Source: Rebecca billardiae RCC1528
Taxonomy: Eukaryota; Protista; Haptophyta
DNA: 64,000 nucleotides
Direction: 5' to 3'
Assembly (NCBI GenBank): GCA_965240325.2
Contig: OZ251227.1
Span: forward strand, 2,480,001-2,544,000
Below, in pieces: positions 3,673-49,170 of this stretch. Numbering within the stretch: position 1 is the first letter of the stretch; each line of letters starts with the position of its first letter. The notes beneath the pieces are model-generated. The model was given only the letters and a program-made list of their open reading frames with translations. It ran no database searches and was not told the DNA's origin. The position numbers and the translations under genes are program-made.

Positions 3673-6600
3673 TCACTGCTGAGTTGGCTGAGTAGCCTCG
3701 CCAGCCGCTGCGGCTTGCGCGGCTCGGCCGGCAGCCGGCGCCGTCGTCGCATCGGTCGAGGACCCGAAGAGGAGGATGGCGAGGATCTGCTCGCGCGTGA
3801 ACGGGCGGCGCGTGATGGGGTCGACGCTCTTGGTCTCGTGCACGAGCGCGCCCGCGCCGTCTGTCTTGAGCTCGAGCAGCCAGCGGCGCACGGAGGCGGC
3901 GAGGTAGGCTTGCGCCGAGCGCAGCGAGGCGTCGCCAGTCTCGCACGCGATCACGACGCGCTCGCCGCGGCGCACGGCCTCGTCGATCGACTCGAAGTGG
4001 ATGAAGTCGTGCCGCCCCGCGCACCGCTGCAGCGCGGCCTCGGGCTCGAGCGCGCGCACGCCCGCCATGCTGAGCGCCGCGGCGGACGCGCAGCCCGGGC
4101 CGACCAGGTAGACATCAAGAGCCTGCGCGTGGTCAGGGATGCATTCCTCCGCTGCGGGGGAAGGGCGGTGTTGGGTGGTGCGGCGCAGGGGTCGGGGGCG
4201 GCGGGCGAATCAGCGCGAGGCGCAGGCTCTCGGACGCACCCTCCCCAGCTCTCGCAGGCGCAAAGGTCGTTACAGAGAGCGCGAGCGCGCGGCACGGCGT
4301 CGCGGCCCCGCGCGCGCGCCCTGGCACGGCGTCGCGGCCCCGCGCGCGCACCGCGGCCGAGCACGTGGTCTTGGAGCCGGTCGAGCGCTGCCTCGTCCAG
4401 CCGGTCCGAGTTGAGCCCGACCAGGAAGCGCAGCCCCGCGGCGAGCGGGCGGGTCGAGTCGTGCGCGCCGCCGTCCGCGTGGAGCTCCGCGGCGCCGGCG
4501 CGCTGCTCGGCGAGCGCGGCCAGCGCCTCGGTGCCGCGCGACGCGCGCTGCACGCCGCGCGAGGCGGAGGAGACGACGATCAGCGTAGCGCGCGGCGCGA
4601 GCTGCGCCTCGCCGAGCGTGCGCGCGCGGTGCGCGGGCTCGGTCGAGAGGTACTCCGCGGGCGGCAGCACCACGCGCAGCCCGAACGGCTCCACGGCCAC
4701 GTGCGGAGGCAGCCGCTCGGCGACGGCCGCGAACACCTGCTCGAGCGTGTCCGCGGCGGTGCGCTCCAAGCAGAGACACTCGCCATCCTCCAGCCTCACA
4801 CGCAGCGTGACGCGTTGCTGCGCGCCGCCGCCGTCGGCGGCGTCGCGCGCGCCAGCCGCGAGCGCGGCGTCGCGCGGCGCCGCGGTGCCGGGCGCCGCCG
4901 CCGCCGCCGCCGCCGTCGGCCGGAGCTCCATCGGCGCGCCGCCGCTCGGCGCAGCGGGCGGGGCGAAGCGCTGGTTCCGGTCCTCGACGAGAGCGCGGCG
5001 GATGCGCTCGCGCTCGAGCTCGCGACGTGCCGCAGCCTCGCGGTGCGCCGCCACGCGCCGCTTGCGCTCGTCTGCGCTGATGCCCGTCTGCGCGCCGGCC
5101 GCGCCGCAGCCCTCTGCAGCCGCCGTCTGCGCCGTGGGCTGCTGCTGCTGCGGCTGCTGCTGCGGCTGCGGCGGCGGCTGCGGCGAGGCCGGCCCTGCGC
5201 TCGCGCACGCGGGCGGGAGAACACCCGCGGCCGCGGCGCGCGCGAGCACGCTGTTCTTCGGAGGGCGGTGCTGCTCCTGCGGCCGCGCGTGCTGCTGCTC
5301 CTGCTGCTGCTGGGCGGCCAGCTCGCGCGCGCGGATCTCCGCGGCTTCGAGCGCCCGCTGCCGAGCCGGATCGAGCGGCGCGCGCGGCGCGGGCGGCGCG
5401 GCAGCGGGCTGCACCGGAGCCGCCGCCGGCGCGTGCGCTGGCGTGGCGACGGGCGCCTCCGGCTCGGGTGGCGCCTGCGAGCGAGTCATGGCCGCGCGCA
5501 GGGCCGACGCGCGTCGCATGCTCGCCACGCGGTCGTCCGCCTGCTGCTCGGACGGCGCTGGCGCCGGCGGCTGGTCTGGAGGCGGCGGGTCAGCCGCGCG
5601 CGCGGCAGCGCTCGCGCCGCGCGCGGGGACGGCCGTGGCGGTGGCGGTGGCCTCAGCATCGGCCTCGGTGGCTGGCTGTGTGCGCCGCTGCAGCGCCTCG
5701 AGCCGTGCCTGCCGTATCTGCTCGGGCGTGAGCGCCGTCGCGGCGCTCTCGGCCGCGCCGCCGCCAAGCGCGCTGCCGCCAAGCGCGCGCCCTTGCCAGA
5801 GTGGCCCTCGGCCCGCCGGCCCTGCGCCGTGCGCCGGGAGGCCGTGCAGAGGCACAGCCTCGTGATCTCGAGGGTACAGGCCCTCCATGGCGTCATCGTC
5901 CTCGCCCTCCTCCTCGTCGTCGCCCTCCTCCAATCCGTCCTCCTGCTCCTCCAACCCCTCCTCCTCCTCAAATCCCTCCTCCTCAAATCCCTCCTCCTCC
6001 TCCTCCTCCTCCTCCTGCTGCGGCTGCTGCTGAGGCCATGCCGGGCCTGGCCACTGGGCACCGGCCGCCGCCTGCGCGCCGCCTTCGCGCGGCGGACGGA
6101 GCACCATCAGAGTGCCGTGGGGCACGAGGCCCGCGTCGGCGAGGGTCGTCGTGCGCAGCAGCTCCTCCGTGTCGTACTCCCGCCGCGGCGTCGGCACGAA
6201 GAAGAAGACGGGGTGCTGCGGCGCGTCGTCGAGCGCGACGTCTTCGGCCGCGGCGTGCGGCTGCTCGCGCGCGGGGCCCGCCGCGCGAAGGCGGCGGGCC
6301 TCCTCGCGCATGCGCTCCGTCTGGCGCTCAAAGTGCTCCCGCCCGAGCCGCGCCATCTCGTTGGGGACGAGGGCCTGCGTCGCACCGACGAACGGCCGCG
6401 GCGCCTGAGCGGCGGGCGTGGGCTCTGCGGGCGTCTGAACAAACCACTCGCGCACGTTCGCGAGCGTGTCCGTGGCGGCGAAGCGGTTGCACCGCGTCGT
6501 GCCGTCGGGGCAGCGGATGCGCACGTCCGCCACGCCGGCGCCGTTCGGCGGGGCCGCACTTGACCCGCGCGCACTCTGCGTCGGCGCGGCCGCGTTGGCT

Positions 6601-6740
6601 TCCTCTCCGGCTGCGTTGGCGGTGGGCGTGCGCTGCTGTGCACGCCGCTCCTTGTCTTCGGCGAGCTGCTGGCGGATTCGCGCGCGCTCCTCCTGATCAC
6701 GCCGCGCCTTGAGACCACGAAGCGCCGCCGAGTGCTCCAT
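3673..6740 (-). CDS. UBX-domain protein with two UBX/ubiquitin-like domains, acidic and Q/A-rich linkers and a C-terminal U-box-like segment; predicted intron 4152-4351, 955 aa
   Basis: VRIRCPDG..RFAATDTLANVREWF and PRREY..TTLADAGLVPHGTL; second LRVRLEDG..ADTLEQV..TLGEAQLAPRATL; a phase-1 GTGCGC donor and CCCCGCAG acceptor join in frame to the 3673-4068 ORF (SVRRWLL..DPITRRPF). Confidence 0.75.
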
Positions 6741-7016
6741 GGATGCGGGCGAGAAAGCGCGCGGTCGGTGAGTGAGGATATGGGGCGCGCGGGCGGCGGC
6801 GGCGGCTGCTTGCGGCCAGCCCCGCCCGGCGCGGCGAAAGCGGAAAGACCAGTCCACGCTGCGGAACCAAGCTACAAGCGCATGTTTCCCCGGACGCACG
6901 CATGAGTGTCCGGTCGGCCGTCGGCGGTCGCTCGAGGAAGGTCACCGTCGTCGTCGCTCCCGACCGGCCGCGACTCGTTCGGGACGTGCACAAACACGTA
7001 CTGCGCCGCGGGCCTG

Positions 7017-10000
7017 ATGGCCGATGTCATCGATTTGTTGACGTCGGAACTGCGCGCCAGCCGCGAGGGCGGCGACAGACGGCGCGAACTTAGATGCGTG
7101 TGCGATCTGGGCAGCGCGTATGATAGCCTCGGGCAGTACGACCGCGCTATCGAGCACCACACGCAGGCGCTGGCCATGAGCCGCGAGATCGGCGACCGAC
7201 AGGGCGAGGGCAGCTGCCTGGGCAACCTGGGCAGCGCGTACGACAGTCTCGAGCAGTACGACCGCGCCATCGAGCACTACACGCAGGCGCTGGCCATTAG
7301 CCGCGAGATCGGCGACCGTGAGGGCGAGGGCACTTGCCTGGGCAACCTGGGCAGCGCGTACGACAGTCTCGAGCAGTACGACCACGCTATCGAGCACCAC
7401 ACGCAGGCGCTGGCCATGAGCCGCGAGATCGGCGACCGACAGGGCGAGGGCAGCTGCCTGGGCAACCTGGGCAGCGCGTACGACAGTCTCGAGCAGTACG
7501 ACCGCGCCATCGAGCACTACACGCAGGCGCTGGCCATTAGCCGCGAGATCGGCGACCGTGAGGGCGAGGGCACTTGCCTGGGCAACCTGGGCAGCGCGTA
7601 CGACAGTCTCGAGCAGTACGACCACGCTATCGAGCACCACACGCAGGCGCTGGCCATGAGCCGCGAGATCGGCGACCGGCAGGGCGAAGGCACTTGTCTG
7701 GGCAACCTGGGCAGCGCGTACGACAGCCTCGGGCAGTACGACCGCGCCATCGAGCACTACACGCAGGCGCTGGCCATTAGCCGCGAGATCGGCGACCGGC
7801 AGGGCGAAGGCACTTGTCTGGGCAACCTGGGCAGCGCGTACGACAGTCTCGAGCAGTACGACCGCGCCATCGAGCACTACACGCAGGCGCTGGCCATTAG
7901 CCGCGAGATCGGCGACCGTGAGGGCGAGGGCACTTGTCTGGGCAACCTGGGCAGCGCGTACGACAGTCTCGAGCAGTACGACCGCGCTATCGAGCACCAC
8001 ACGCAGGCGCTGGCCATGAGCCGCGAGATCGGCGACCGGCAGGGCGAAGGCACTTGTCTGGGCAACCTGGGCAGCGCGTACGACAGTCTCGAGCAGTACG
8101 ACCGCGCCATCGAGCACTACACGCAGGCGCTGGCCATTAGCCGCGAGATCGGCGACCGGCAGGGCGAAGGCACTTGTCTGGGCAACCTGGGCAGCGCGTA
8201 CGACAGTCTCGAGCAGTACGACCGCGCCATTGAGCACTACACGCAGGCGCTGGCCATTAGCCGCGAGATCGGCGACCGGCAGGGCGAAGGCACTTGTCTG
8301 GGCAGCCTGGGCAGCGCGTACCACAGCCTCGGGCAGTACGACCGCGCCGTCGAGCACCACACGCAGGCGCTGGCCATCCGCCGCGAGATCGGCGAGATGC
8401 AGGGCGAGGGCGCTGATCTGGGCAACCTGGGCCGCGCGTACCACAGCCTCGGGCAGTACGACCGCGCCATCGAGCACCACACGCAGGCGCTGGCCACCTT
8501 CCGCGAGATCTTCTACAGGCAGGGCGAGGGCGCTTGCCTGGGCAACCTGGGCAGCTCGTACGACAGCCTCGGGCAGTACGACCGCGCCATCGAGCACTAC
8601 ACGCAGGCGCTGGCCATCAGCCGCGAGATCGGCGACAGGCGGGGCGATGGCGCTTGCCTGGGCAACCTGGGCAGCGCGTACCACAGCCTCGGGCAGTACG
8701 ACCGCGCCGTCGAGCACCACACGCAGGCGCTGGCCATCCGCCGCGAGATCGGCGAGATGCAGGGCGAGGGCGCTGATCTGGGCAACCTGGGCCGCGCGTA
8801 CCACAGCCTCGGGCAGTACGACCGCGCCATCGAGCACCACACGCAGGCGCTGGCCACCTTCCGCGAGATCTTCTACAGGCAGGGCGAGGGCGCTTGCCTG
8901 GGCAACCTGGGCAGCTCGTACGACAGCCTCGGGCAGTACGACCGCGCCATCGAGCACCACACGCAGGCGCTGGCCATCAGTCGCGAGATCGGCGACAGGC
9001 GGGGCGAGGGCACTGATCTGGGCAACCTGGGCACAGCGTACCGCAGCCTCGGGCAGTACGACCGCGCCATCGAGCACTACACGCAGGCGCTGGCCATCAG
9101 CCGCGAGATCGGCGACAGGCGGGGAGAGGGCACTGATCTGAACAGCCTGGGCGTCGCGTACCGCGACCTCGGGCAGTACGACCGCGCCATCGAGCACCTG
9201 ACGCAGGCGCTGGCCATCAGCCGCGAGATCGGCGACAGGCAGGGAGAGGGCACTTGCCTGAGCCACCTGGGCGTCGCGTACGACAGTCTCGAGCAGTACG
9301 ACCGCGCCATCGAGCACCACACGCAGGCGCTGGCCATCAGCCGCCAGATCGGCAACAGGCAGGGCCAGGGCGCTTGCCTGGGCAACCTGGGCGTCGCGTA
9401 CCGCAGCCTCGGGCAGTACGACCGCGCCATCGAGCACCTGACGCAGGCGCTGGCCATCAGCCGCGAGATCGGCGACAGGGAGGGCGAGGGCGCTTGCCTG
9501 GGCCACCTGGGCAGCGCGTACCACCGCCTCGGGCAGTACGACCGCGCCATCGAGCACTACACGCAGGCGCTCGCCATCAGCCGCGAGATCGGCGACAGGC
9601 GGGGCGAGGGCGCTGATCTGGGCAGTCTGGGCATCGCGTACCGCAGCCTCGGGCAGTACGACCGCGCCATCGAGCATCACACACAGGCGCTGGCCATCAG
9701 CAGCGAGATCGGCGACAGGCGGGGCGAGGGCACTTGCCTGGGCAATCTGGGCGGCGCGTACCACATCCTCGGGCAGTACGACCGCGCCATCGAGCACCTG
9801 ATCCAGGGCCTGGCCATCAGCCGTGAGATCGGCGACAGGCAGGGAGAGGGCACTCGCCTGTGCGACCTGGGCATCGCGTACGACAGCCTCGGGCAGTACG
9901 ACCGCGCCACCGAGCATCACACGCAGGCGCTGGCCATCAGCCGCGAGATCGGCGACAGGCGGGGCGAGGGCACTGATCTGGGCAACCTGGGCAGAGCGTA

Positions 10001-13000
10001 CCGCAGCCTCGGGCAGTACGACCGCGCCATCGAGCACCATGCGCAGGCGCTGGCCATCAGCCGCGAGATCGGCGACAGGCGGGGCGAGGGCGCTCGCCTG
10101 GGCAATCTGGGCGGCGCGTACCACATCCTCGGGCAGTACGACCGCGCCATCGAGCACCTGATCCAGGGCCTGGCCATCAGCCGTGAGATCGGCGACAGGG
10201 AGGACGAGGGCACTCGCCTGTGCGACCTGGGCATCGCGTACGACAGCCTCGGGCAGTACGACCGCGCCACCGAGCATCACACGCAGGCGCTGGCCATCAG
10301 CCGCGAGATCGGCGACAGGCGGGGCGAGGGCACTGATCTGGGCAACCTGGGCAGAGCGTACCACAGCCTCGGGCAGTACGACCGCGCCATCGAGCACCAT
10401 GCGCAGGCGCTGGCCATCAGCCGCGAGATCGGCGACAGGCAGGGCGAGGGCACTTGCCTGGGCCACCTGGGCAGCGCGTACAGCAGCCTCGGGCAGTACG
10501 ACCGCGCCACCGAGCACCACACGCAGGCGCTGGCCATCAGCCGCGAGATCGGTGACAGGCAGGGCCAGGGCACTGGCCTGGGCCACCTGGGCGTCGCGTA
10601 CAGCAGCCTCTGGCAGTACGACCGCGCCATCGAGCACCACACGCAGGCGCTGGCCATCAGCCGCGAGATCGGCAACAGGCGGGGCGAGGGCGCTCGCCTG
10701 GGCAACCTGGGCGTCGCGTACGAGAGCCTCGGGCAGTACGACCGCGCCATCGAGTACCACACGCAGGCGCTGGCCATCAGCCGCGAGATCGGCGACAGGC
10801 GGGGAGAGGGCACTGGTCTGAACAGCCTGGGCGTCGCGTACCGCGACCTCGGGCAGTACGACCGCGCCATCGAGCACCTGACGCAGGCGCTGGCCATCAG
10901 CCGCGAGATCGGCGACAGGCAGGGAGAGGGCACTTGCCTGAGCCACCTGGGCGGCGCGTACCGCAGCCTCTGGCAGTACGACCGCGCCACCGAGCACCAC
11001 ACGCAGGCGCTGGCCATCAGCCGCGAGATCGGCGACAGGCAGGGCCAGGGCGCTAGCCTGGGCAACCTGGGCGTCGCGTACTGCAGCCTCGGGCAGTACG
11101 ACCGCGCCATCGAGCACTACACGCAGTCGCTGGCCATCAGCCGCGAGATCGGCGACAGGCAGGGCCAGGGCGCTTGGCTGGGCAACCTGGGCAGTGCGTA
11201 CGACAGCGTCGGGCAGTACGACCGCGCCATCGAGCACCACACGCAGGCGCTGGCCATTTGCCGCGAGATCGGCGACAGGCTGGGCGAGGGCGCTCGCCTG
11301 GGCCGCCTGGGCATCGCGTATGCAGGCCTCGAGCAGTACCAGCGCGCAGCGGAGCACTTTACAGCTGCCTTGGCTGTGCACGACACGCTGTGGATCGACC
11401 TCAGCTCTGATGGGGCGCGCGTGTCTTTTGGCGACACTGATCTGCCAGTCGGCGCCTCCGCAGGCCTGCAACGGATGCTCGTGCGTTCAGGGCGGCAGGC
11501 AGAGGCGCTCGAAGCGGCCGAGCGCGGCCGCGCTCGCTCGCTGGCGCTCCTGCTGGCGCGGCAGCACTGCGCGCGGGACCCGCGCCGCGCCGCCGCTCCG
11601 GACGCCTCGACTGCCTCGCGCGCCCTGCCGCCAGCGCTCTCGTGGCAGCAGATGCGCGCGTATGCGCTGCGCCACCGAGCCTGCCTTGTGCTCTTCTCGC
11701 AGCCGACGAGCAGCGACCGCGTGTACGCGTGGGTGCTCCGACCAGACGACAGCTCGCCGCCGCTTTTCCACGAGCTCTCGCTGGGCGAGCAGTCGGTGCT
11801 CACGCTCGTGAAGGAGACGCGTGGCGCCATCCGCCGGTGCCGCAAATACGCTTCTGACGCCTACAGCCGCATCGACGGCAGCGCAGCAGGCGTGGCCGCG
11901 GCCACGCGTGTCCGCGCCTCAGTGCGGGTTGGGGCGCAGGAGAGGGGCAAGCGCCGGCGCAGCGATGAGGAGTTGGCCGAGGCGGAGGCGGCTGCACAGC
12001 AGCAGCTGCGGCGGTGTCACGAGCTCCTGCTGCAGCCGCTGGCGCAATCGCTCACCGGGTGCGACAGGCTCATCCTGCTGCCCGACGGCGAGCTGCACGC
12101 GCTGCCGTTCGCCGCGCTGCTCGACGCCGATGGCAAGCACCTGGTCGAGCGCTATGACATGAGCGTGGCGCCGTCGGTCGGCACGCTGATTCAGCTCGAC
12201 GAGCAGCGCTCCGCCGGCCGCGTGTCCACCTCGGCCGCGGGCGTGGCCCAGCGCGCGCTGGTCGCGGGCATCGACGAGTACAGCGCGCACGCGCTGCCGT
12301 GGCGGCTGCGGAGCGACGACCTGGAACAGGCGCAGGAGGCCGTGCGCACGAAGGCCAGGTGGTGCGTCTGGGTCGAGGCGCAGGCCGTGGACGGCGGCTC
12401 CCGCGTGCACGTGCGCGAGCTCGAGCGCAGTGCGCGGAGGCAGCTCGCAGAGCAGCTCCAGGTGGGCGACGTGGTGGGCGAAGCGCTGGACGACCTCTGC
12501 GAAGCCGAGCTGGAGGCATTGCAAGTGGCGGTATATCTGGGGAACTCGAGCGCGGGGAAGGCGCGCCGGCTGGAGGTGACGAGCCTGACTGGCGCGCAGG
12601 TGACGAAGCGCGCGCTGCTGCGCGAGCTCAGGCACGCAAACCTCGTGCACCTCGCGCTGCATGGCTCGCCGACGGGCCTGCATCTGGCGGGCTCGAGCGC
12701 TGAGGAGGCGACGCTGGACATGGCGGATGTCGAGCCACTCGACCTGCGCCACGTGCGGCTTATGCTGCTGAGCGCGTGCGACACGTTCCGCGGCGAGCTG
12801 AGCTCGGAGGGCCTGATCGGCATCGCGCGCGCCTTCCTCTCCGCGGGCTGCGGCACGCTGCTCGCCTCGCTGTGGCCCGTGGACGACACGCAGACGCGCG
12901 AGCTGATGCAGGAGCTGTACCCACGCCTGGCTGCGGGCTTGGATCCTCAGCCAGAGGCGGGGGGCGATGGGCGCGTGGATGTGGCAGGCGTGCTGTGCGC

Positions 13001-13103
13001 CACGATGCGCGAGCTCGTGCACAGGAAGCGCGAGGATGGCTCGCGCGCCTTCCTCTTGCACCAGTGGGCGCCTTTCGTCGTCTTCGGCGCTCCTTCCATC
13101 TGA
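7017..13103 (+). CDS. TPR-CHAT protein (TTC28-like architecture): 36 TPR repeats plus a caspase-like CHAT domain
   Basis: 40-aa repeats EGxxLGNLGxAYxSLGQYDRAIEHxTQALAISREIGDR; CHAT motifs ERGRARSL, LPDGELHALPFAAL, HLALHG, LSACDT, LASLWPVDD, WAPFVVFG; first ATG at 7017. Confidence 0.93.
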   Translation: MADVIDLLTSELRASREGGDRRRELRCVCDLGSAYDSLGQYDRAIEHHTQALAMSREIGDRQGEGSCLGNLGSAYDSLEQYDRAIEHYTQALAISREIGDREGEGTCLGNLGSAYDSLEQYDHAIEHHTQALAMSREIGDRQGEGSCLGNLGSAYDSLEQYDRAIEHYTQALAISREIGDREGEGTCLGNLGSAYDSLEQYDHAIEHHTQALAMSREIGDRQGEGTCLGNLGSAYDSLGQYDRAIEHYTQALAISREIGDRQGEGTCLGNLGSAYDSLEQYDRAIEHYTQALAISREIGDREGEGTCLGNLGSAYDSLEQYDRAIEHHTQALAMSREIGDRQGEGTCLGNLGSAYDSLEQYDRAIEHYTQALAISREIGDRQGEGTCLGNLGSAYDSLEQYDRAIEHYTQALAISREIGDRQGEGTCLGSLGSAYHSLGQYDRAVEHHTQALAIRREIGEMQGEGADLGNLGRAYHSLGQYDRAIEHHTQALATFREIFYRQGEGACLGNLGSSYDSLGQYDRAIEHYTQALAISREIGDRRGDGACLGNLGSAYHSLGQYDRAVEHHTQALAIRREIGEMQGEGADLGNLGRAYHSLGQYDRAIEHHTQALATFREIFYRQGEGACLGNLGSSYDSLGQYDRAIEHHTQALAISREIGDRRGEGTDLGNLGTAYRSLGQYDRAIEHYTQALAISREIGDRRGEGTDLNSLGVAYRDLGQYDRAIEHLTQALAISREIGDRQGEGTCLSHLGVAYDSLEQYDRAIEHHTQALAISRQIGNRQGQGACLGNLGVAYRSLGQYDRAIEHLTQALAISREIGDREGEGACLGHLGSAYHRLGQYDRAIEHYTQALAISREIGDRRGEGADLGSLGIAYRSLGQYDRAIEHHTQALAISSEIGDRRGEGTCLGNLGGAYHILGQYDRAIEHLIQGLAISREIGDRQGEGTRLCDLGIAYDSLGQYDRATEHHTQALAISREIGDRRGEGTDLGNLGRAYRSLGQYDRAIEHHAQALAISREIGDRRGEGARLGNLGGAYHILGQYDRAIEHLIQGLAISREIGDREDEGTRLCDLGIAYDSLGQYDRATEHHTQALAISREIGDRRGEGTDLGNLGRAYHSLGQYDRAIEHHAQALAISREIGDRQGEGTCLGHLGSAYSSLGQYDRATEHHTQALAISREIGDRQGQGTGLGHLGVAYSSLWQYDRAIEHHTQALAISREIGNRRGEGARLGNLGVAYESLGQYDRAIEYHTQALAISREIGDRRGEGTGLNSLGVAYRDLGQYDRAIEHLTQALAISREIGDRQGEGTCLSHLGGAYRSLWQYDRATEHHTQALAISREIGDRQGQGASLGNLGVAYCSLGQYDRAIEHYTQSLAISREIGDRQGQGAWLGNLGSAYDSVGQYDRAIEHHTQALAICREIGDRLGEGARLGRLGIAYAGLEQYQRAAEHFTAALAVHDTLWIDLSSDGARVSFGDTDLPVGASAGLQRMLVRSGRQAEALEAAERGRARSLALLLARQHCARDPRRAAAPDASTASRALPPALSWQQMRAYALRHRACLVLFSQPTSSDRVYAWVLRPDDSSPPLFHELSLGEQSVLTLVKETRGAIRRCRKYASDAYSRIDGSAAGVAAATRVRASVRVGAQERGKRRRSDEELAEAEAAAQQQLRRCHELLLQPLAQSLTGCDRLILLPDGELHALPFAALLDADGKHLVERYDMSVAPSVGTLIQLDEQRSAGRVSTSAAGVAQRALVAGIDEYSAHALPWRLRSDDLEQAQEAVRTKARWCVWVEAQAVDGGSRVHVRELERSARRQLAEQLQVGDVVGEALDDLCEAELEALQVAVYLGNSSAGKARRLEVTSLTGAQVTKRALLRELRHANLVHLALHGSPTGLHLAGSSAEEATLDMADVEPLDLRHVRLMLLSACDTFRGELSSEGLIGIARAFLSAGCGTLLASLWPVDDTQTRELMQELYPRLAAGLDPQPEAGGDGRVDVAGVLCATMRELVHRKREDGSRAFLLHQWAPFVVFGAPSI
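7081..11400 (+). repeat. Coding tandem array, 36 units of 120 bp
   Basis: Exact 120-bp periodicity with no indels; each unit encodes one TPR. Confidence 0.97.
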
Positions 13104-16324: not shown

Positions 16325-18277
16325 TCAGCCGCCGGCACATCCATGGTGGCATAGCACAGGCGAGGACGATGCCGCCGTCGACGCGGCACGGTCGCAGCGA
16401 AGCTGACCGCCCGCGCGCGCACTCGCGCCGGCGCGCAGCAGCTCAGCCAAGCGCTCGAGCGCTGCTGCTGATCTGTCTGTACGCGACGCGTGCACCGCAA
16501 AGGCAATGTCGTCGAGCCTGCGCTCGGCTGTGGTCACATTCATGCGCTCTGGCTTCAGCGCGGCGGTGGCGTTGCCCAGCTCTCCAAGCGCGCGGCACGC
16601 CGCCAGCTCGTGCGCCCGCACCTGCGCCCAGTGCACCTTCTGCCACCTGCCGGCGTTTTCGCGGCTGAAGGGCGAGCGCACGTGGGCGACGCGTGCCGCG
16701 AGGGGCAGGACGAGCGTGGCGGGCGCGCGCCAGCGCTGCTGCAGCTCGGCGACGTCCGTCGCGAGCTGCCACTGCTCCGACGGGGGCTGCGCGCACAAAG
16801 CCATCGGCTGCGCCCGCGCCGGCTCGAGGACGAGGAAGAGCCGGCCTGCGTCTGCGCACGCCGTCGCGTCCAGCGCGCCCGACCAGTCGCTCACGTTGAG
16901 CTCCCGCGCGAACAAGTGGGGCGTGCGCGCCAGGACGAGCTCGGCGGCAGCGGGGAGCACCGCGGCCTCGTATCCGAGGGCTCGGAGTGCCGGCAGCACC
17001 AGCGGCAGCGCCTCCATCAGCGTCCCGAACGCGAGCTGGTCCGCCCTCGCCGCGCGGCCGCCCTGGGTGCCGCCGCTGCGCACGCGTTCCGGCGGGCGCG
17101 TGAGCACGGCTGGCGGCACGAACTTGTCGGCGAAGCCGTTCCAAAAGTCGGGGGCGATGCCGAAGCCGTTGCGCATCGCGAGCGCGCTCGTCAGCGCCGA
17201 TGCGGGCGAGCGCCGCGCCGCGAGCGCGCGCATCGAGTACAGCTGCAGCGCCTCGACGTCGATGCCGCCCGCCTCATACACGCCCGCACCAAAGAGCGCC
17301 GGCGCGTGCCGCGTGTCAAACAGCAGGTGGAGCTCGTTGGCGCGCACGATGGCGGCGCCGTGCACACGGCACTCGGCGCAGGCGAGCGCGCGCGGCGAGT
17401 ACATGCACTCGACCCCGTGCGCGCGCAGCCGCCCCACGAATCCACCCAGCATCGACGCGTTGTACAGCAGGGCGTGGTCCTCTGCAAAAGTGGACACGTC
17501 CGACACCCACGGGGCGGACGAGGGGAGCCCGGCCGGGCGGGTGCCGCGCTTGATGGGCCGGTTGGAGCGGGGCGGGACCTCGACGCCGTGGGTCTCGGCG
17601 CCTTCGAGGGTCTTCCGGTTCGACGGGAGCATGCTGTTCACGATGTACGTGTTCACGGCGAGCAGCGGCGCGTGACTCGCCGCCTTCAGACCGCCGCCTG
17701 TCTGCGAGCACCTGTTCCGATCCGCGTGCGAGCCGGTTTGTGACGCGCGGTGCGCGGTGTCGGCGAGCAGGGTGTGCAGCATGCGCTCGATAATGGTCTG
17801 CATCGGCAAGTGCCACGCATGCCAGACGGGGAGCGGGTGCAAGTCGCAGTCCATCGACGCGAGCGCGGGCACGTCAGGCCACAGCCGCAGCGCGATTGCC
17901 TGTGCGAGAACGTTACCCGAGATCCGATCGAGCTCCACGAGCGTCGCGCCGCGCGTGGGCGCGGAGGAAAGCACCTCGCGCGCGTGCAGGACGCGCGCGA
18001 GCTCGTGCCCGAACACGTACGCGGTCTCCCAGCGCGGGTCCAGGAACCGGCCGAGCGAGTGGCAGCCGAGCACCAGCTCTCTGTGCTGCACAACAACTGC
18101 GAGTGGCAGCGGCGCCGGCAGCCGGCTCGGCTCGGCCGCCGCGTGATGGGTGAGCCCGACAACGCCCAGGTCGGCCAGATCGGCCACGGCGCGCACGCCC
18201 AGTCCCTGCGCCGTCGAGATGACGCTCGCCATCGTCATCAGGCGCGCAGCATTGGCGCGCCTGGTGACGACAGCCAT
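16325..18277 (-). CDS. Hypothetical protein, possibly glycosyltransferase-like
   Basis: 650-aa ORF with globular-looking composition; DxD (MDCD) and LYNASMLGG are only suggestive. Confidence 0.55.
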   Translation of the reverse strand: MAVVTRRANAARLMTMASVISTAQGLGVRAVADLADLGVVGLTHHAAAEPSRLPAPLPLAVVVQHRELVLGCHSLGRFLDPRWETAYVFGHELARVLHAREVLSSAPTRGATLVELDRISGNVLAQAIALRLWPDVPALASMDCDLHPLPVWHAWHLPMQTIIERMLHTLLADTAHRASQTGSHADRNRCSQTGGGLKAASHAPLLAVNTYIVNSMLPSNRKTLEGAETHGVEVPPRSNRPIKRGTRPAGLPSSAPWVSDVSTFAEDHALLYNASMLGGFVGRLRAHGVECMYSPRALACAECRVHGAAIVRANELHLLFDTRHAPALFGAGVYEAGGIDVEALQLYSMRALAARRSPASALTSALAMRNGFGIAPDFWNGFADKFVPPAVLTRPPERVRSGGTQGGRAARADQLAFGTLMEALPLVLPALRALGYEAAVLPAAAELVLARTPHLFARELNVSDWSGALDATACADAGRLFLVLEPARAQPMALCAQPPSEQWQLATDVAELQQRWRAPATLVLPLAARVAHVRSPFSRENAGRWQKVHWAQVRAHELAACRALGELGNATAALKPERMNVTTAERRLDDIAFAVHASRTDRSAAALERLAELLRAGASARAGGQLRCDRAASTAASSSPVLCHHGCAGG

Positions 18278-18750: not shown

Positions 18751-19803
18751 TCACCGCCGCCCCCCGGCGGCAGACGAGTTGCGCTCCTTCTCGAGCACGT
18801 GCACGGCGTGGAGCATCTTGGCGATGCCCCCATCCTGATCCCCCACGGCTTCATCTCGCGGGCCCTCGGCGTCGTCGTTGAGCGCCGGCTCTCGGGTCGA
18901 GAGCTGTTGCTGCAGGTGGCGCAGGGTGAGCGCCGCGTCGTGCAGCCTGCCGGCTTGCACGTACACGCACGCGAGCACCCTGCACGTGCGCGCCAGCTCT
19001 GCCGCGTCGCCGGCTGCATCCGCCTGCTGCGCGTCGCGCGCCGTGAGCAGCTGCGCGATGGCCTCCGCCTCCTTGCGCCGCTGCATGAGCGCGAAGGCCA
19101 GGTCGACGCGCGCGAGTGACGTACGCGCGTGCCGCTCGCCGCACGACCGGCCCAACGCGCCGACGGCCTTGCGGTACGCGTCGACAGCAGCGCCCTTGTC
19201 GCCGGCGCGTAGGTGCGCCTCGCCGAGGGCACAGAGGATGTCGCCCAGGTCGGCAGTCGGGGGTCCGAGCACGCAGCGCGCGAGGGCCTGCGCGCGGAGG
19301 AGGTGGTGCTTCGCCTGTCGGAGCCGGCCGCCCTCGAGGTACACGAGCCCGAGGTTGAAGTGCGCGCTCGTCGCCCCGGGGAAATCCTTCCCAAACGCTT
19401 CCGTCAGAACCTCCGCCGCGTGGTGGTAGCTCTCTTCCGCGAGCTCGAGCTGATGCCGGCGCGCGTTCGTGGCGCCGAGCGCGAGGTGGATGGCGCCGAG
19501 TAGCTGCGGGTCGGCAGGCACAAGCCGGTTGTGCGCCTCCAGCGCCTCGCTGAGCGCCTCGGCCGCTTTGTCCGCGTCTCCCGACTCGACGTGCGTGAGC
19601 CCGAGCTGATGCATCGCGGCGATATGTTCGCGCGAGCCATCGCCATAGGCCGTGCGGCAGTGCTCGACGAGGCGAGACAGGCTTTGCGCACTCTCGCGGT
19701 ATCGCCCGGCACACCGATGGCGCCAGCCAAGCTCCAGCAAGTCCATGCGGCCATCCGGCTGCGGCGGCGAAATGACCGCAGCGCTGCTGGGCAGCGGCGC
19801 CAT
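18751..19803 (-). CDS. TPR protein (kinesin-light-chain-type ~42-aa TPRs)
   Basis: AMHQLGLTHVESG..AAEAL, AHFNLGLVYLEGG..A, LGEAHLRAGD..A..AYRKA. Confidence 0.8.
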   Translation of the reverse strand: MAPLPSSAAVISPPQPDGRMDLLELGWRHRCAGRYRESAQSLSRLVEHCRTAYGDGSREHIAAMHQLGLTHVESGDADKAAEALSEALEAHNRLVPADPQLLGAIHLALGATNARRHQLELAEESYHHAAEVLTEAFGKDFPGATSAHFNLGLVYLEGGRLRQAKHHLLRAQALARCVLGPPTADLGDILCALGEAHLRAGDKGAAVDAYRKAVGALGRSCGERHARTSLARVDLAFALMQRRKEAEAIAQLLTARDAQQADAAGDAAELARTCRVLACVYVQAGRLHDAALTLRHLQQQLSTREPALNDDAEGPRDEAVGDQDGGIAKMLHAVHVLEKERNSSAAGGRR

Positions 19804-23337: not shown

Positions 23338-23572
23338 GCCGCCGATCGACACGGGTGGCTCTGGACGCGGGCCAGCAAGGATGCCTGCCCTGGAAGTCCG
23401 GCGGCTCAGCAGGCCCTGGTCCGGGCGAGCTGCCCACACAGCAGCCGATTTTGTTTTGTGAGCCGGCGCGCGATTTTCGGCAGCGCCAAAAAGAAAGACA
23501 GGCTGGGCTGCAGTGCTGCACAGCTCGACATCTCCGCCAGCGCGGAGGTGTCGTTCGTCGCAGCTCGGCACG

Positions 23573-26500
23573 ATGCTGCTAACGCCTGGCGTGCTGCTCC
23601 TAGCGGCCGTCTCGGCGGGGGTGGGACCTGCGGCCCCGGCGCAGGTGGCGCCAGGCGTTGCGCACCGGCTCTCGCCCGCGCGCACGCTCGAGCTCCCGAC
23701 CGCGAGCTCCTTACCCGCGCACGCCAGGCCACGCGGCGGGTACGGCGTTCGCGTCGAGCTCCACGGCGCGTCTCTCGCGCTCAATGGATCGACGCACCGC
23801 GTGGAGAACGGCACGTGGGTGTGGCGCATGCAGCTGCGCAGCGCCGGGGCGCACTCGCTGAGCGCCCACCTCGACGGCGTGCGCGTCGAGCCGGGCGACG
23901 CGCTTTACGTCTACAGCGGAACGCACGGACACGGTGCGGGCCGCGCCTACTCGCACTCAGCGGGCGCCAGCCGGAGGAGCGAGCAGCTGGTCACCGCGCC
24001 CCTGCCGGGCGAGGCGCTCGTGCTTGAATATTGCGCCGCGCCCGGCTCGCCCGCGGCTGCGGGCCCTCCGCTCCGCGTGCGCGCCGCGATCGTGGGCGTG
24101 CGTCCGACATTCGGGATCCACCGGTTTGGCGGCGGCGGCGGCGGCGGCGGCCTCGGCGAAGGCGGCGAAGGCCTCAGCAGCGGCGGCGACGGCGGCAACG
24201 GCGGCAACGGCGGCGACGACCACGCCGCCGTTCGCGACGACGGCGCCGCTCCCGCCGCCGCCGCCGAGGAGAAGGCGGGCGGCCTCCCGACGGAGCGCGT
24301 TCCACCCAAGAGCTCCGCCGCCGCCGCGGGCGGCACGAACGAGGACCGCGGGCACTCGCGCCGCGCGCGCGTGCACAACTCGAGCTGGACGTTCGACTCC
24401 CTCGTCTCCGAGCTCGAGTACGGCGTGCACGCCTCCGAGGCCGCGCACCTCAGCTGCCAGGTCAACCCGTCCTGCCCCGAGGTCGAGCAATGGTCGGAGG
24501 TGACGCGCGGCGTGGCGCTCGTACTGAACGAGTACGGCGCGCTGTGCTCCGGCTCGCTGGTGAACACGCTCACGCCCGCCGCCTCCGGCGGGCGCGGCGG
24601 CGCGCGGCACCAGTACTTCCTCACCGCCTTCCACTGCATCCGCGAGGTCGTCGAGGCGCCGGCGTTCGACGTCGCCAACGAGAGCTCGACGTGGCTGCCT
24701 TTTTTATTCGTCTTTAATTGGGTCTCGCCCTCGTGCCACCCGTCGCGCGCGCCGTCGAGCCGGCGCGCGCTCGAGGCGGCGGGCGCGGACGCGGTCTTCG
24801 GCGCGCACATCCGCGCGTACGGCAACGACTCCGACTTCGCGCTCCTCGAGATCGAGGAGCCCATCCCGCGCGCGTACAATGTCCGGTACAACGGCTGGGA
24901 CGCGACCGCGGCCGTGCCGGCCGGCGCGTTCGTCGTGCATCACCCGGAGGGCGACCTGATGAAGGTGGCGGTGGAGCGCGACGCGCTGCGGCTCGGGCTG
25001 TTCGGCGGGCAGGGCTACCACCAGACCATCGCGCACACGCGGCGCACGTGGCAGGCGCCGCACTGGTACGTGCAGCACTACGAGCTCGGCTCGACCGAGT
25101 CGGCGTCGTCGGGCGCGCCGCTCTTCTCCCCGGATGGCCTCGTGGTGGGCGTGCTCCACGGCGGCTTCGCGACGTGCGAGGACCCGTCGCACGACTGGTT
25201 CGGCCGGCTGTCGTACATGTTCCACAACCGGCTGCTCTTCGAGCAGGGCATCCGGCACGGCCAGCTCCAGCCGTGGCTCGATCCGGGCGCGACCGCGCGG
25301 CTGCGCACGCGCGGCGCGGACGGCGAGCCGCATGCCAACGTGCCGAGTGCAGACGCAGGCCTGATGGTGCAGCCCAAGCTGATCGAGCTGGGCGCGGTGG
25401 GCGCGGCGCACGTGCGCGCGGAGCGGAGGCGCGAGCGGCACGAGCCGAGCGCCGCCGCCGCCGACCCCGTGCGCGTGCGCCTCTCCCTGCTCGCGCGGCC
25501 GACCGCGCCCGTGGCCGTGTACGCGCGCGCCGCCGAGCCCGCCGCGCCGGGCGCGCACGCGCGCGCGCACGGCACCTCCCGCCGTGGGCGCATGCGGCGC
25601 GAGAGCGACGCGCACAACAGCCTGAACCGGCTCGACGACATGGACCCGCCTCCAGAGCAGCCCGCGCCGGCGCCGCGCTCCGGCCCGCGCGCGGGCGGCG
25701 TGGGCAAGGCGTCCCTCCCGGACGCGACGAGCAAAGCGCCCGCCTCCGACGGCGGCGCGGGCGGTCCACCATTCTCAGCGGCGCTCGCCGACGGCTCGGT
25801 GCTCGTGGCGGTGCTCGCGGACGCGCAGGCGCCGAGCGACGCGCGCGCCGACGCGGAGGCCGCCCCGTGGTTCTCGCCGCGCGACGTGCAGCTGCCGCCG
25901 GCGCTCGTCAGCCGCGCCGTCGGCGCCGCGCGGCACAAGCAGGACCAGCCGATGCTGCAGCTGTGCGCGCGCTCCGCGGACGCGGCGTACGATGGTGTGG
26001 TGCTCGACCTCGCGATTGCGACCGCGACGCCGCCGGCGGGGGGTCGGCACGCGCAGCCGGGCACGCCGCCGGGCGTGCAGTTCGAGACGTGCGTGCGCGT
26101 GCTGAGCGGCACCTCGCAGCTCCCCGGCCTCCTCCCCGGCAGCGGGTACGACGTGCGCTCGTGCTACGCCAAGTGCAGAGGTTCGCCTTTCTTCGGCCTC
26201 GCCGCCTCGCGCTGCGTGTGCGCCTCGCGGCTCGGCGCGCACCTCTCGGTCGTGCCGAGCGACTGCGGGCCGCCGTGCGCCTCGGAGGTGGACACGGACG
26301 TGTACTCGCTCTGCGGCTCCGAGTACTACGTCGCCGTCTACACCACGGGGGCGCACGGCCACGAGCACGCGCTCGAGCTGAGAGGCGCGCCGCGCGCGCA
26401 GCCGACGGGCGCGCGGCGGGCGCGCGGCGCGCCCGCGCTGCGCCCGCTGGCGGCCGATGCGCGCGCACTCGCGCGGAGGGCGCTGCCGGCCCTCGCCGTG

Positions 26501-31964: not shown

Positions 31965-32066
31965 CGCAATGACGTGATCGCAGATCGCCGGCGGAGTCGT
32001 GTGGGCTGCCACCGGACGTGCAGGCGGCAGGCCGCTCAGCGCGCATCCCCCGCGGAGGAAGCAGAG

Positions 32067-49045: not shown

Positions 49046-49170
49046 TACAGTTTATTTGTTTTAACGTGTGTAAGGCTCACGGTGGCAGGTTGCCGCGCCA
49101 TCCTTCATCGCACGCACAGTACTAGGTATTGGTATTGGTACCTCTGCGGGGAGAGCATCATCAGGGCGTC

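Follow-up and report, generated by a model that had tools for sequence, protein, structure and literature searches.

A 36-unit TPR array joined to a CHAT protease in a pavlovophyte haptophyte: a candidate sensor-protease with shuffled repeats

Comparison with described systems

Bacterial and environmental TPR-CHAT proteins (PF12770, "Caspase HetF Associated with Tprs") include Leptolyngbya P0005 and the environmental proteins P0295 and P0450. Like the haptophyte gene described here, they encode TPRs, a linker, and a CHAT domain, in that order. Their whole-module models superpose with the model of this gene at a TM of 0.70 to 0.73 and about 3 Å over 455 to 478 residues. They share the 40-residue consensus GEGxxLGNLGxAYxxLGxYxxAIxxxxQxLAIxREIGDRx, and the cyanobacterial and environmental members have the same most variable columns (14, 11, 15, 4, and 40, then 33 and 26). 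The architecture and the pattern of variable columns therefore belong to the family and are not specific to this gene. Unit-to-unit identity of at least 50% was found in 15 of the 143 TPR-CHAT representatives. The haptophyte array is the longest and most homogeneous of those compared, with 36 units and a window self-identity of 0.96 versus a maximum of 0.78. Unlike the bacterial genes, it is eukaryotic. Loci L002 and L004 contain an adjoining second TPR-CHAT gene and Peptidase_C14-DUF4384 genes, which the haptophyte gene lacks.

Csx29, from the type III-E CRISPR "Craspase," gave the best match of any solved structure to the C-terminal module (8eey_B, E 1.5e-12, and numerous further entries). 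It also contains TPRs before a CHAT protease, and it is switched on by binding elsewhere in the complex. The identity is 10 to 13%, and the TM is about 0.45. The TPRs of Csx29 are few and divergent and dock onto Cas7-11, whereas the eukaryotic haptophyte gene has 36 homogenised units and no CRISPR effector.

Animal TTC28 (TPRBK) and the coral TPR-CHATs have an extended N-terminal series of TPR_12-type repeats and, after it, one CHAT domain. Cnidarian "TTC28-like" clusters were among the nearest predicted structures (TM 0.67 to 0.70), a likeness of architecture and fold that does not imply orthology. The coral expansions comprise 276 to 362 copies in haplotype-variable regions, and their TPR regions are as long as 3,832 residues (PMC12314368; PMC9145168). 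What the coral papers describe is variation in copy number and length, and not homogenised units that are hypervariable at particular positions. Human TTC28 has been linked to mitosis and cytokinesis (PMC12314368).

The fungal NLRs (Podospora HET-E/D/R, NB-ARC-TPR; TPR, ANK, and WD repeats) contain near-identical units with repeat-number polymorphism and concerted evolution by unit exchange (PMC4986451). The positively selected or polymorphic sites of their TPRs are on the concave face (PMC4986451). In fungi, CHAT is also the effector of some NLRs and some NOD-less repeat proteins, which control gasdermins (PMC10197012). The haptophyte protein resembles them in its near-identical repeats, its unit exchange, and its variable, probably concave TPR face. 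It differs in that it contains no NACHT or NB-ARC, and its effector lies on the C-terminal side of the repeats, where the fungal effector lies on the N-terminal side. No gene resembling a gasdermin was detected next to it.

The NB-ARC-TPR and ROCO-LRR candidate receptors of Ectocarpus diversify by shuffling of repeat cassettes (PMC3341825, PMC11378527). They are algal, repeat-based, and cassette-shuffled, as proposed for the haptophyte gene. They have one exon per repeat, exon-level shuffling, and an NTPase/GTPase switch, whereas the haptophyte array is a single exon with no switch.

Of the natural solved TPRs, those of LGN/GPSM2 and Pins come closest both by sequence (E 1e-37, in a gapless 40-residue register) and by fold (TM up to 0.77). 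In their solved complexes, helix A lines an inner channel in which extended peptides lie. Columns 6 to 8 of the haptophyte unit correspond to the Leu-Gly-Asn motif. LGN differs in having eight divergent repeats, fixed partners, and no protease.

The gene and its surroundings

The window is the whole stretch of 64,000 nucleotides analysed, from a pavlovophyte haptophyte. The gene is in an ORF at 6906 to 13103 on the plus strand. The first ATG is at 7017, and the protein starts with MADVIDLL. The gene contains 2,028 codons and a stop in a single ORF, with the TPR array followed by the CHAT protease module. Its GC3 is 0.91.

7017 to 13103, plus strand: complete TPR-CHAT gene without introns (ORF and Pfam domains)
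6884 to 7016, no strand: intergenic stretch of about 134 bp, common to the TPR-CHAT gene and a divergent UBX-domain gene

The UBX-domain gene is at 3954 to 6899 on the minus strand, and the stretch between the two genes may serve as a bidirectional promoter. It leaves no space for an NTPase exon upstream. The protein encodes no NTPase or any further domain beyond the TPRs and CHAT. Known partner genes (gasdermin, NTPase, or CRISPR effector) were not found near the gene, and there was no match to a PADLOC defence family. The proposal that CHAT replaces an NTPase as the output was right in that the NTPase is absent and CHAT is the effector. It was wrong about the NTPase, which in an NLR is the switch and not the output.

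The protease module

11403 to 12002, plus strand: linker and N-terminal half of the protease module (helices and a small beta sheet), conserved in TPR-CHAT relatives
12003 to 12947, plus strand: CHAT domain PF12770 (Pfam, E 2.4e-41)
12660 to 12662, plus strand: catalytic His codon, H1882, motif HLALHG, in a column at least 90% conserved in 70 relatives
12777 to 12779, plus strand: catalytic Cys codon, C1921, motif LSACDT, invariant in 70 relatives

The first of these regions is the structural counterpart of the region before the active domain in Csx29 and separase. A second His at 12648 to 12650, which precedes H1882, is invariant in the 70 relatives. The AlphaFold model of the module had a pLDDT of 85.7, with a low-confidence insertion in the CHAT domain at model residues 330 to 420. 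Besides Csx29, the best solved matches were separase, DdvA, SAVED-CHAT, and gingipain. Among 1.8 billion cluster representatives, none is more than about 50% identical to the module. Judged by its motifs and its model, it appears to be an active CHAT (caspase/separase-fold) protease with an intact His-Cys dyad. The predicted fusion of a TPR array to a caspase-like protease is supported by Pfam, by the conservation of the catalytic columns, and by the structure matches.

The repeat array

The array was the only large tandem array in the window (Tandem Repeats Finder). It was found at 7107 to 11347 with a period of 120, 35.3 copies, 89% matches, 0% indels, and a score of 6142. It contains 36 TPR units of 40 residues (120 bp) in register with no indels. 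The motif Q-Y-D-R-A occurs 36 times in the ORF at an exact 40-residue spacing. Two DNA framework strings matched 35 and 33 times with at most three mismatches, versus about zero by chance. In units 2 to 35, 57 of the 120 nucleotide columns are invariant. The predicted near-invariant DNA framework of 36 units is therefore present. Mean identity in units 2 to 35 is higher in nucleotides (88%) than in amino acids (80%). Thirty-two of these 34 units are distinct in DNA, and 26 distinct groove signatures occur among them.

7083 to 7202, plus strand: unit 1, degenerate N-terminal cap (16 to 31 of 120 mismatches to other units)
7203 to 8282, plus strand: units 2 to 10, homogeneous block (0 to 9 mismatches per 120 bp; 94% amino acid identity)
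8283 to 11282, plus strand: units 11 to 35, diversified block (78% amino acid and 88.5% nucleotide identity)
11283 to 11402, plus strand: unit 36, degenerate C-terminal cap (44 to 53 of 120 mismatches)

The hypervariability resides in units 11 to 35. Units 2 to 10 are near-identical to one another, with the recurring groove signature (T/S)CGNSDS. These 9 of the 36 units look closer to a recent neutral expansion than to a diversified surface.

Repeat recombination, which had been proposed, left several traces. An exact two-unit duplication of 294 bp is present within the block of units 2 to 10 (7145 to 7385). Units 11 to 13 are duplicated as units 14 to 16 (292 bp exact), and units 23 to 25 match units 26 to 28. 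Units 18 to 20 match units 32 to 34 over 137 bp exactly, 1,680 bp apart. The array also contains mosaic units and four-gamete pairs a few bases apart. Given the exact multiunit duplications and the mosaic units, the array is therefore undergoing reshuffling. It is rearranged by tandem duplication of blocks of one to three units, by longer-range copying, and by short-patch exchange.

Variable columns and the groove face

Unit columns were numbered as the TPR position plus 2 (Pfam TPR_1 alignment); L7, G8, Y11, A20, and A27 fall at columns 9, 10, 13, 22, and 29. Every residue set listed in the original prediction is present in the array. Columns 4 and 5 contain the pairs SC, TC, AD, AC, TD, TR, AR, TG, AS, and AW. 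Column 7 contains G/C/N/S, column 8 N/H/S/D/R, and column 11 S/V/R/I/G/T. Column 14 contains D/H/R/S/E/C, with A in a cap, and column 15 contains S/D/I/R, with G in a cap. The seven codons for TPR positions 2, 3, 5, 6, 9, 12, and 13 hold 46% of the nucleotide diversity in 17.5% of the unit length, and 62% is reached with columns 17, 26, and 40. The claim that the differences cluster in a few codons thus stands, but its list missed columns 40 and 26, which are as variable as the listed positions, and it does not describe the near-identical units 2 to 10.

Columns 40, 4, 5, 7, 8, 11, 14, and 15 lie together on a single face of helix A, and the invariant packing residues are on the opposite one. 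On a helical wheel, the mean direction of the variable positions is 130 degrees, versus 315 degrees for the core, and only 144 of 43,758 subsets matched this clustering. The concave hypervariable positions of TPRs are 2, 5, 9, 12, and 13, and the ligand contacts of HOP are positions 2, 5, 6, 9, 12, and 13 (PMC1261162, Magliery & Regan). By the wheel and these positions, the variable sites are on the exposed side of helix A and probably face the groove, as predicted. From established TPR structure, this face would be the concave groove for extended peptide ligands. The model of the TPR segment had a pLDDT of 96; of five single-sequence TPR models, only one was confident. The best structure matches of the segment were LGN/Pins-peptide complexes (TM 0.70 to 0.77; 32 to 33% identity), and its sequence aligned to Pins over 205 residues without a gap. 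The units are LGN/Pins-type 40-residue TPRs.

Selection on the variable codons

The dN at variable codons was 0.385, versus a dS of 0.105 at framework codons. A tree-free minimum gave 1.54 nonsynonymous events per variable site and 0.63 synonymous events per framework site. Amino acid change at the variable codons is thus 2.4 to 3.7 times the framework synonymous rate. Relaxed constraint alone is insufficient, because relaxation cannot push dN above the neutral rate. Inside the variable codons, dN/dS was 0.93 (about 0.9 to 1.2), and synonymous change was raised there too. Because synonymous change is as high as nonsynonymous change in these codons, part of the pattern could come from mutation or exchange acting locally. 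Differences between recent duplicates were 32 nonsynonymous to 10 synonymous, a near-neutral ratio.

Under a single synonymous rate, omega exceeded 1 at five or six columns: 4, 5, 11, 14, 40, and (26). With site-specific synonymous rates, it did so only at columns 4, 14, and 40, and alpha exceeded beta at column 5. These site tests use one tree, which recombination among units violates, and all of them are inflated by it. The per-codon dN/dS suggested as a check is accordingly not uniform, with framework and variable codons differing, but the evidence for positive selection at groove codons is model-dependent. Columns 11 and 14 vary at bases 1 and 2, and the third base is C in 32 to 33 of the 36 units.

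An environmental relative has alleles with 1, 2, 4, or 12 units beside a protease that is 98 to 100% identical. Its allelic nonsynonymous changes are at columns 4, 7, 8, 11, 14, 15, and 33. Its variable-codon diversity is 0.39, 0.35, and 0.07 at codon positions 1, 2, and 3.

Interpretation

We favor, with a probability of roughly 0.55, a one-chain sensor-protease without a NOD switch, in which a shuffled TPR solenoid diversifies ligand specificity and controls CHAT. The 36-unit array would be a long ligand-binding solenoid. Unit shuffling, together with diversity-favoring selection (or local hypermutation) at groove codons, would diversify its specificity. A ligand in the groove may switch the protease on, or the groove may deliver a substrate to it. 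If Csx29, SAVED-CHAT, and separase are a guide, the ligand could act by relieving autoinhibition or by causing the proteins to cluster.

A possible but clearly less probable explanation is a scaffold protease of the ordinary kind, whose array expands neutrally. The TPRs would recruit a few fixed partners or substrates, as suggested for TTC28 or the separase helical domain, and slippage during replication or unequal crossing-over would make unit number drift. The variable columns would simply be unconstrained and solvent exposed, perhaps with raised local mutation or import of patches from paralogues. The dN/dS near 1 and raised synonymous change in the variable codons, the ratio in recent duplicates, and the single near-identical block of units 2 to 10 agree with this. 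Variation at these same columns is a feature of the TPR fold in general and is seen in all TPRs (PMC1261162). Neither a switch domain nor a partner gene was found, and it is mitosis, rather than immunity, to which the animal homologue TTC28 has been linked (PMC12314368). Against it are the excess of amino acid change over the framework synonymous rate and the chemically radical swaps (C/D/R/G/S/W, S/V/R/I/G/T, and D/H/R/S/E/C). The variation of columns 11 and 14 at bases 1 and 2 also speaks against it. So does the environmental relative, in which codon positions 1 and 2 show a clean excess and the alleles differ only in the variable columns.

It is improbable that the length, order, or homogeneity of the array, especially of units 2 to 10, come from a misassembled shorter array or merged paralogues. 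Exact repeats of up to 294 bp do occur within the 4.3-kb array, and assembly collapse could produce the environmental 4-unit and 12-unit contigs, which are otherwise identical. However, all 36 units are in frame with no indel, each end has a distinct cap, both flanks are unique, and 32 of 34 units can be told apart in DNA. The biological conclusions are independent of the exact unit count.

Multicopy spread of TPR-CHAT genes by transposons, with an array irrelevant to host function, is the least probable explanation: no inverted repeat of at least 11 nt links the 780 bp upstream to the 900 bp downstream, no transposase was present among the larger ORFs scanned around the gene, and the gene is in an ordinary gene-dense context, 134 bp from the UBX gene.

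The haptophyte gene is not the only one of its kind: bacteria and corals also have TPR-CHAT proteins, and fungi have repeat-CHAT proteases. A sensor-protease of the kind that we favor would most likely serve in sensing of non-self or viruses or in control of cell death.

Architecture of the TPR-CHAT gene

Tandem Repeats Finder returned a single array at 7107-11347, with a period of 120 bp, 35.3 copies, 89% matches, no indels, and a score of 6142. The array lies within one long open reading frame.

6906-13103 (+), ORF around the array; the first ATG, at 7017, gives a protein of 2,028 residues

The GC3 of the gene is 0.91. The motif Q-Y-D-R-A occurs 36 times in the ORF at a spacing of exactly 40 residues. 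The array was divided into 36 units, the first beginning at 7083, and units 1 and 36 are degenerate caps. Just 22 residues precede the first unit. The two framework strings of the original prediction had 35 and 33 matches at up to three mismatches, against about 0 expected by chance.

The Pfam model TPR_12 (E 8e-284) and further TPR models span the array. CHAT (PF12770) covers ORF residues 1700-2014 with an E value of 2.4e-41 and 142.5 bits, above the gathering cut-off of 24. The TPRs are directly N-terminal to a protease module of the caspase/separase-type fold. No NTPase (NACHT or NB-ARC) or other domain was found among the Pfam matches over the whole ORF. The proposed architecture, a TPR array fused to CHAT without an NTPase, was borne out by these matches. 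It differs from that of NLR/STAND receptors, which have a central NACHT or NB-ARC NTPase.

A hidden NTPase or extra exons were considered and rejected. The plus-strand ORFs upstream have no Pfam match, and the true upstream neighbor is a UBX gene on the minus strand. Its start is about 134 bp from the ATG of the TPR-CHAT gene, so a hidden upstream exon is unlikely. The stop codon is at the usual C-terminal end for CHAT proteins.

The UBX-domain gene (3954-6899, minus strand) is divergent from the TPR-CHAT gene, with a gap at 6884-7016. The two genes probably share a promoter region. An antisense ORF of 1,509 residues (6942-11471, minus strand) also spans the array. It shows no sign of being a gene and is open only because this frame of the repeat unit is free of stops.

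Variation among the TPR units

Units 2 to 35 share a mean identity of 88% in nucleotides and 80% in amino acids, with 57 of the 120 nucleotide columns invariant. Amino-acid identity is below nucleotide identity, so the differences fall preferentially on replacement sites. Units were placed in register with the Pfam TPR_1 alignment (L7, G8, Y11, A20, and A27 on columns 9, 10, 13, 22, and 29), in which the unit column equals the TPR position plus 2. The TPR positions 2, 3, 5, 6, 9, 12, and 13 that had been named as variable are therefore columns 4, 5, 7, 8, 11, 14, and 15. All of the residue sets listed for them were found in the array. The list was incomplete, since column 40 is equally variable and was missing from it.

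By entropy, the ten most variable columns are 11, 14, 5, 40, 26, 8, 4, 17, 38, and 7. The seven variable codons make up 17.5% of the unit length and carry 46% of its nucleotide diversity, or 62% when columns 17, 26, and 40 are added.

The variation is not even along the array. Units 11 to 35 have 78% amino-acid and 88.5% nucleotide identity, and the predicted hypervariability holds for them. It does not hold for units 2 to 10, which form a near-identical block with 0 to 9 mismatches per 120 bp and one repeated groove signature. "High internal conservation" has been defined by repeats that are at least 85% identical across 100 residues or more (Dyrka et al. 2014; PMC4986451). Units 2 to 10 exceed this fungal-NLR threshold, with 94% amino-acid identity over 360 residues, and units 11 to 35 are under it.

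Third-base variation between C and T (7083-11402; columns 5, 8, 15, and 26) is concentrated in codons whose amino acid also varies. In these four columns the site-wise synonymous rate is 4.7 to 13 times the average, and the intervening framework codons show hardly any such variation. The excess is explained neither by hitch-hiking nor by a simple hot spot. It is absent in L004, a contig of the environmental cluster around P0295.

Position of the variable residues on the TPR fold

A single-sequence AlphaFold model of units 17 to 26 had a pLDDT of 96, one of five models being confident. Its DSSP limits place helix A at columns 39-15 and helix B at columns 19-35. On a helical wheel, variable columns 40, 4, 5, 7, 8, 11, 14, and 15 have a mean direction of 130 degrees, and the invariant residues L6, L9, G10, Y13, and L16 point to 315 degrees. 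Equally one-sided subsets were 144 of 43,758.

The most variable TPR positions are 2, 5, 9, 12, and 13, with 33 and 34, and all are on the concave face (Magliery & Regan, PMC1261162). The ligand contacts of HOP are at positions 2, 5, 6, 9, 12, and 13 (Magliery & Regan, PMC1261162). Five of these six contact positions are among our ten most variable columns (hypergeometric P = 0.002). The nearest natural solved TPRs are the LGN/Pins domains, which match at E 1e-37 in a gapless 40-residue register and at a fold TM of 0.70 to 0.77. These domains were crystallized with peptides in the inner channel. Placement of the variable columns on the concave face is well supported but indirect, the surface being assigned from the DSSP helix limits, the helical-wheel statistic, and the literature.

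Reshuffling of the array

A unit-by-unit mismatch matrix revealed several multi-unit duplications. Units 2-3 equal units 4-5 (294 bp exact), and units 11-13 are almost the same as units 14-16 (292 bp exact). Units 23-25 are almost the same as units 26-28. Units 18-20 are almost the same as units 32-34, which are 14 units away (137 bp exact). Changes between recent duplicates are clustered in neighboring groove codons, for example, columns 4 and 5 or columns 11, 14, and 17. Four-gamete pairs made up 219 of the 1,326 informative-site pairs, and some were 1 to 6 bp apart.

The proposed repeat recombination is supported by the exact duplications and the four-gamete pairs. Together they show the array to be a mosaic, made either by block duplication and short-patch exchange or by recurrent mutation. 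Mutagenesis of the DGR type was rejected, as all four bases occur at the variable codon positions and the variation is not limited to A. The larger ORFs scanned in the window include no reverse transcriptase. The array itself, its architecture, the location of its variability, and its ongoing reshuffling were all confirmed.

Probable selection on the groove codons

Pairwise Nei-Gojobori estimates were a dN of 0.385 and a dS of 0.412 for the seven variable codons and a dN of 0.047 and a dS of 0.105 for the 30 framework codons. The per-codon check on the units gave a clearly non-uniform dN/dS, not the uniform ratio that would speak against the original prediction. Within the variable codons the ratio is 0.93. 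A tree-free count of minimum events gave 1.54 replacement changes per site at the variable codons, with 0.63 synonymous changes per site at framework codons and 1.71 at variable codons.

The codon tree had an omega of 0.78 and a kappa of 3.1. Custom site-wise likelihood fits (FEL-like) were repeated from several starts. Recombination among units inflates every tree-based selection test here, including the following.

Omega > 1 with one shared synonymous rate: columns 4 (8.4, p 1e-5), 5 (3.9), 14 (3.7), 40 (3.2), 11 (2.9), and marginally 26
Beta > alpha with site-specific synonymous rates: columns 4 (p 3e-4), 40 (0.012), and 14 (0.034)

With site-specific rates, column 5 takes the reverse sign (alpha > beta).

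Replacement change at the groove codons is 2.4 to 3.7 times a neutral proxy taken from the rest of the unit, so relaxed constraint alone is insufficient. The excess vanishes against the synonymous sites of those same codons. Part of the pattern may come from a local hot spot or from patches imported from paralogues, as synonymous change in the variable codons (dS 0.412) is as high as replacement change (dN 0.385). Selection favoring diversity at the groove codons is likely but not proven.

The protease module

The C-terminal 606 residues were aligned with 69 relatives. The catalytic Cys C1921 (LSACDT) is invariant in this 70-sequence alignment, and the catalytic His H1882 (HLALHG) is conserved in at least 90% of it. 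The model of the module had a pLDDT of 85.7. Its best Foldseek match was Csx29 (E 1.5e-12), the TPR-CHAT of the type III-E Craspase. Separase, the anti-sigma factor DdvA, SAVED-CHAT, and gingipains were the next matches. Superposition on predicted TPR-CHAT proteins of bacteria (mostly Cyanobacteriota and Acidobacteriota) and on cnidarian "TTC28-like" proteins gave a TM of about 0.7.

The setting is not that of a Craspase. Neither Cas7-11/gRAMP nor a CRISPR locus was found with the gene; the genome is eukaryotic, and the neighbors are UBX, RTE1-like, and S26 peptidase genes. Among known defense families, PADLOC gave no system match and merely a marginal match to BovA around the catalytic Cys, and NCBIfam gave nothing.

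Foldseek also matched ciliary central apparatus proteins of Chlamydomonas and mouse (7n6g_1N, 7sqc_R0/R1, and 9ijj_A/B) to the TPR-plus-CHAT-like module, at a TM of about 0.4 to 0.45. These matches indicate that a structural, non-immune use of this fold exists in eukaryotes. Human TTC28 is described as the single-copy counterpart of coral TPR-CHAT and is tied to cytokinesis (PMC12314368; PMC9145168). The likeness to TTC28 seen here is a fold-level closeness to cnidarian TTC28-like clusters, and no named TTC28 was among the sequence matches listed.

Relatives and the environmental cluster

The CHAT family contained 72,705 cluster representatives at E values up to 1e-3, of which only 109 score 1e-30 or better, and identity is about 54% at most. 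The exact protein was absent from the public collections searched. Unnamed environmental proteins are the nearest relatives. Some relatives carry extra domains of eukaryote type: PUB and UBA in P0121, and a Myb domain with a trypsin-like tail in P0122. The best-scoring relative of the protease module, the environmental protein P0292 (2,498 aa), contains an AAA ATPase and two successive TPR-CHAT modules. In this version of the family an NTPase is present.

The 40-residue unit consensus of the TPR-CHAT gene recurs in many relatives, among them a Leptolyngbya protein. They also have the same most variable columns, which are 14, 11, 15, 40, and 4, followed by 33 and 26. Identity between adjacent units is at least 50% in 15 of 143 representatives, with a maximum of 0.78, compared with 0.96 in the TPR-CHAT gene.

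The environmental protein P0295 has a protease 42% identical to that of the TPR-CHAT gene. Its cluster at 90% identity contains proteins of 562, 602, 682, and 1,002 residues, with 1, 2, 4, and 12 units, respectively. Their C-terminal 480 residues are 98 to 100% identical. As DNA, L002 (the contig with 4 units) does not differ from L004 (the contig with 12 units) outside the array, and its four units are units 1, 2, 11, and 12 of L004. This difference in unit number could be either a real deletion or an assembly collapse.

A further allele, L003, has 21 differences in 1,440 nt of the protease (8 replacement, 11 synonymous). Its three comparable TPR units have 11 replacement and 4 synonymous differences, and all of the replacements are at columns 4, 7, 8, 11, 14, 15, or 33. 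Across the 12-unit array, diversity at codon positions 1, 2, and 3 is 0.39, 0.35, and 0.07 in the variable codons and 0.03, 0.05, and 0.09 elsewhere. This environmental array is a clean case of replacement excess.

The loci of this relative differ from that of the TPR-CHAT gene in their gene content. In both L002 (770-6818) and L004 (326-7334), the TPR-CHAT gene is in a compact cluster with a convergent second TPR-CHAT gene, a TPR-only gene, and a Peptidase_C14-DUF4384 gene. The cluster may be a multi-protease module. No confirmed relative was found in metagenome contigs searched with the protease module as DNA, and genome contigs searched with the protease module of P0295 gave no relative.

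Neighboring genes

The window has a GC content of about 70%, with uneven composition. It contains eukaryotic genes for F-box-RCC1, kinase-RCC1, HECT, UBX, RTE1, and BiP proteins. The BiP shares 95% identity with the Diacronema lutheri protein and 88% with the Emiliania and Tisochrysis proteins, which places the host among the pavlovophyte haptophytes, near D. lutheri but distinct from it. UBX, RTE1-like, and S26 peptidase genes are the neighbors of the TPR-CHAT gene. Other features of the window are as follows.

16328-18277 (-), ORF downstream of the 350-residue TPR_12 protein, with no Pfam match and no similarity to the CHAT module
18754-19803 (-), TPR_12 protein of 350 residues with divergent repeats, without CHAT
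23513-26686 (+), ORF of 1,058 residues with a Trypsin_2 peptidase domain
31122-35216 and 38300-40567 (+), RCC1-repeat proteins on either side of the BiP gene, one with an F-box and the other with a protein kinase
49129-52842 (+), large ORF with matches to glycosyltransferase group 1 and "GT4 in conflict systems" (E about 1e-5 to 1e-6)

A second TPR-CHAT gene on the minus strand (18754-19803 with 16328-18277) was considered and rejected, since the repeats of the TPR ORF are divergent and the ORF next to it has no relation to CHAT. The Trypsin_2 ORF has no similarity to the trypsin-like C-terminal tails of the relatives P0001 and P0122. Transposon cargo was also rejected, since no inverted repeats flank the TPR-CHAT gene. 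No gasdermin family was found among the ORFs within about 10 kb of the protease gene, a search by Pfam that divergent gasdermins could escape. In corals, genes that join GT1 to repeats are expanded together with TPR-CHAT genes (PMC12314368). The glycosyltransferase ORF here showed no repeat array.

Possible function and significance

In fungal NLRs, the TPR, ANK, and WD repeats are highly conserved, their number is polymorphic, and positive selection acts on the concave face; repeats conserved to this degree are only 0.4 to 1.2% of repeats generally (PMC4986451). Fungal gasdermins have as neighbors CHAT proteases that carry TPR, ANK, or WD repeats and may or may not have a NOD (PMC10197012). 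In corals, 276 to 362 TPR-CHAT genes lie in haplotype-variable regions, and their TPR regions reach 3,832 residues (PMC12314368; PMC9145168). In Ectocarpus, NB-ARC-TPR and ROCO-LRR genes shuffle repeat exons (PMC3341825; PMC11378527). The TPR-CHAT gene is an extreme new case of a known kind, not a new kind.

We found no paper on haptophyte TPR-CHAT genes and no pathogen or non-self receptor for haptophytes in the searchable literature. The papers found on CHAT with TPR and hypervariable repeats concern DGRs, fungi, and corals, and none was found on arrays both homogenized and hypervariable in TPR-CHAT proteins. Haptophytes are major marine primary producers. Caspase-like activity accompanies the virus-driven collapse of their blooms.

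The TPR-CHAT gene may have a receptor or immune role, which we infer by analogy. Tentatively, with a probability of about 0.3, haptophytes and the wider bacterial and coral TPR-CHAT family would have NOD-less single-chain sensor-proteases. The long TPR solenoid would read extended peptides, either foreign or altered-self, with a helix-A "code", and unit duplication and exchange would re-deal this code continually. Peptide binding would fire the caspase-like protease directly and trigger cell death or defense.

In bacterial and environmental TPR-CHAT proteins, too, units are homogenized, their number differs, and the hypervariable helix-A columns are the same. These three shared features suggest a property general to this very large family, which numbers more than 70,000 sequence clusters. 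Published work covers its architecture and copy number, and we found no paper on this way of evolving. If the helix-A positions are a readable peptide-recognition code, the arrays would be of interest to repeat-protein designers. As a receptor candidate, a protease family wired directly to a peptide-binding solenoid that is quickly re-dealt is concrete and testable. If the proposal is true, these sensor-proteases would form a recognition system in parallel to NLRs, and haptophyte algae would have their first candidate family of innate immune receptors.
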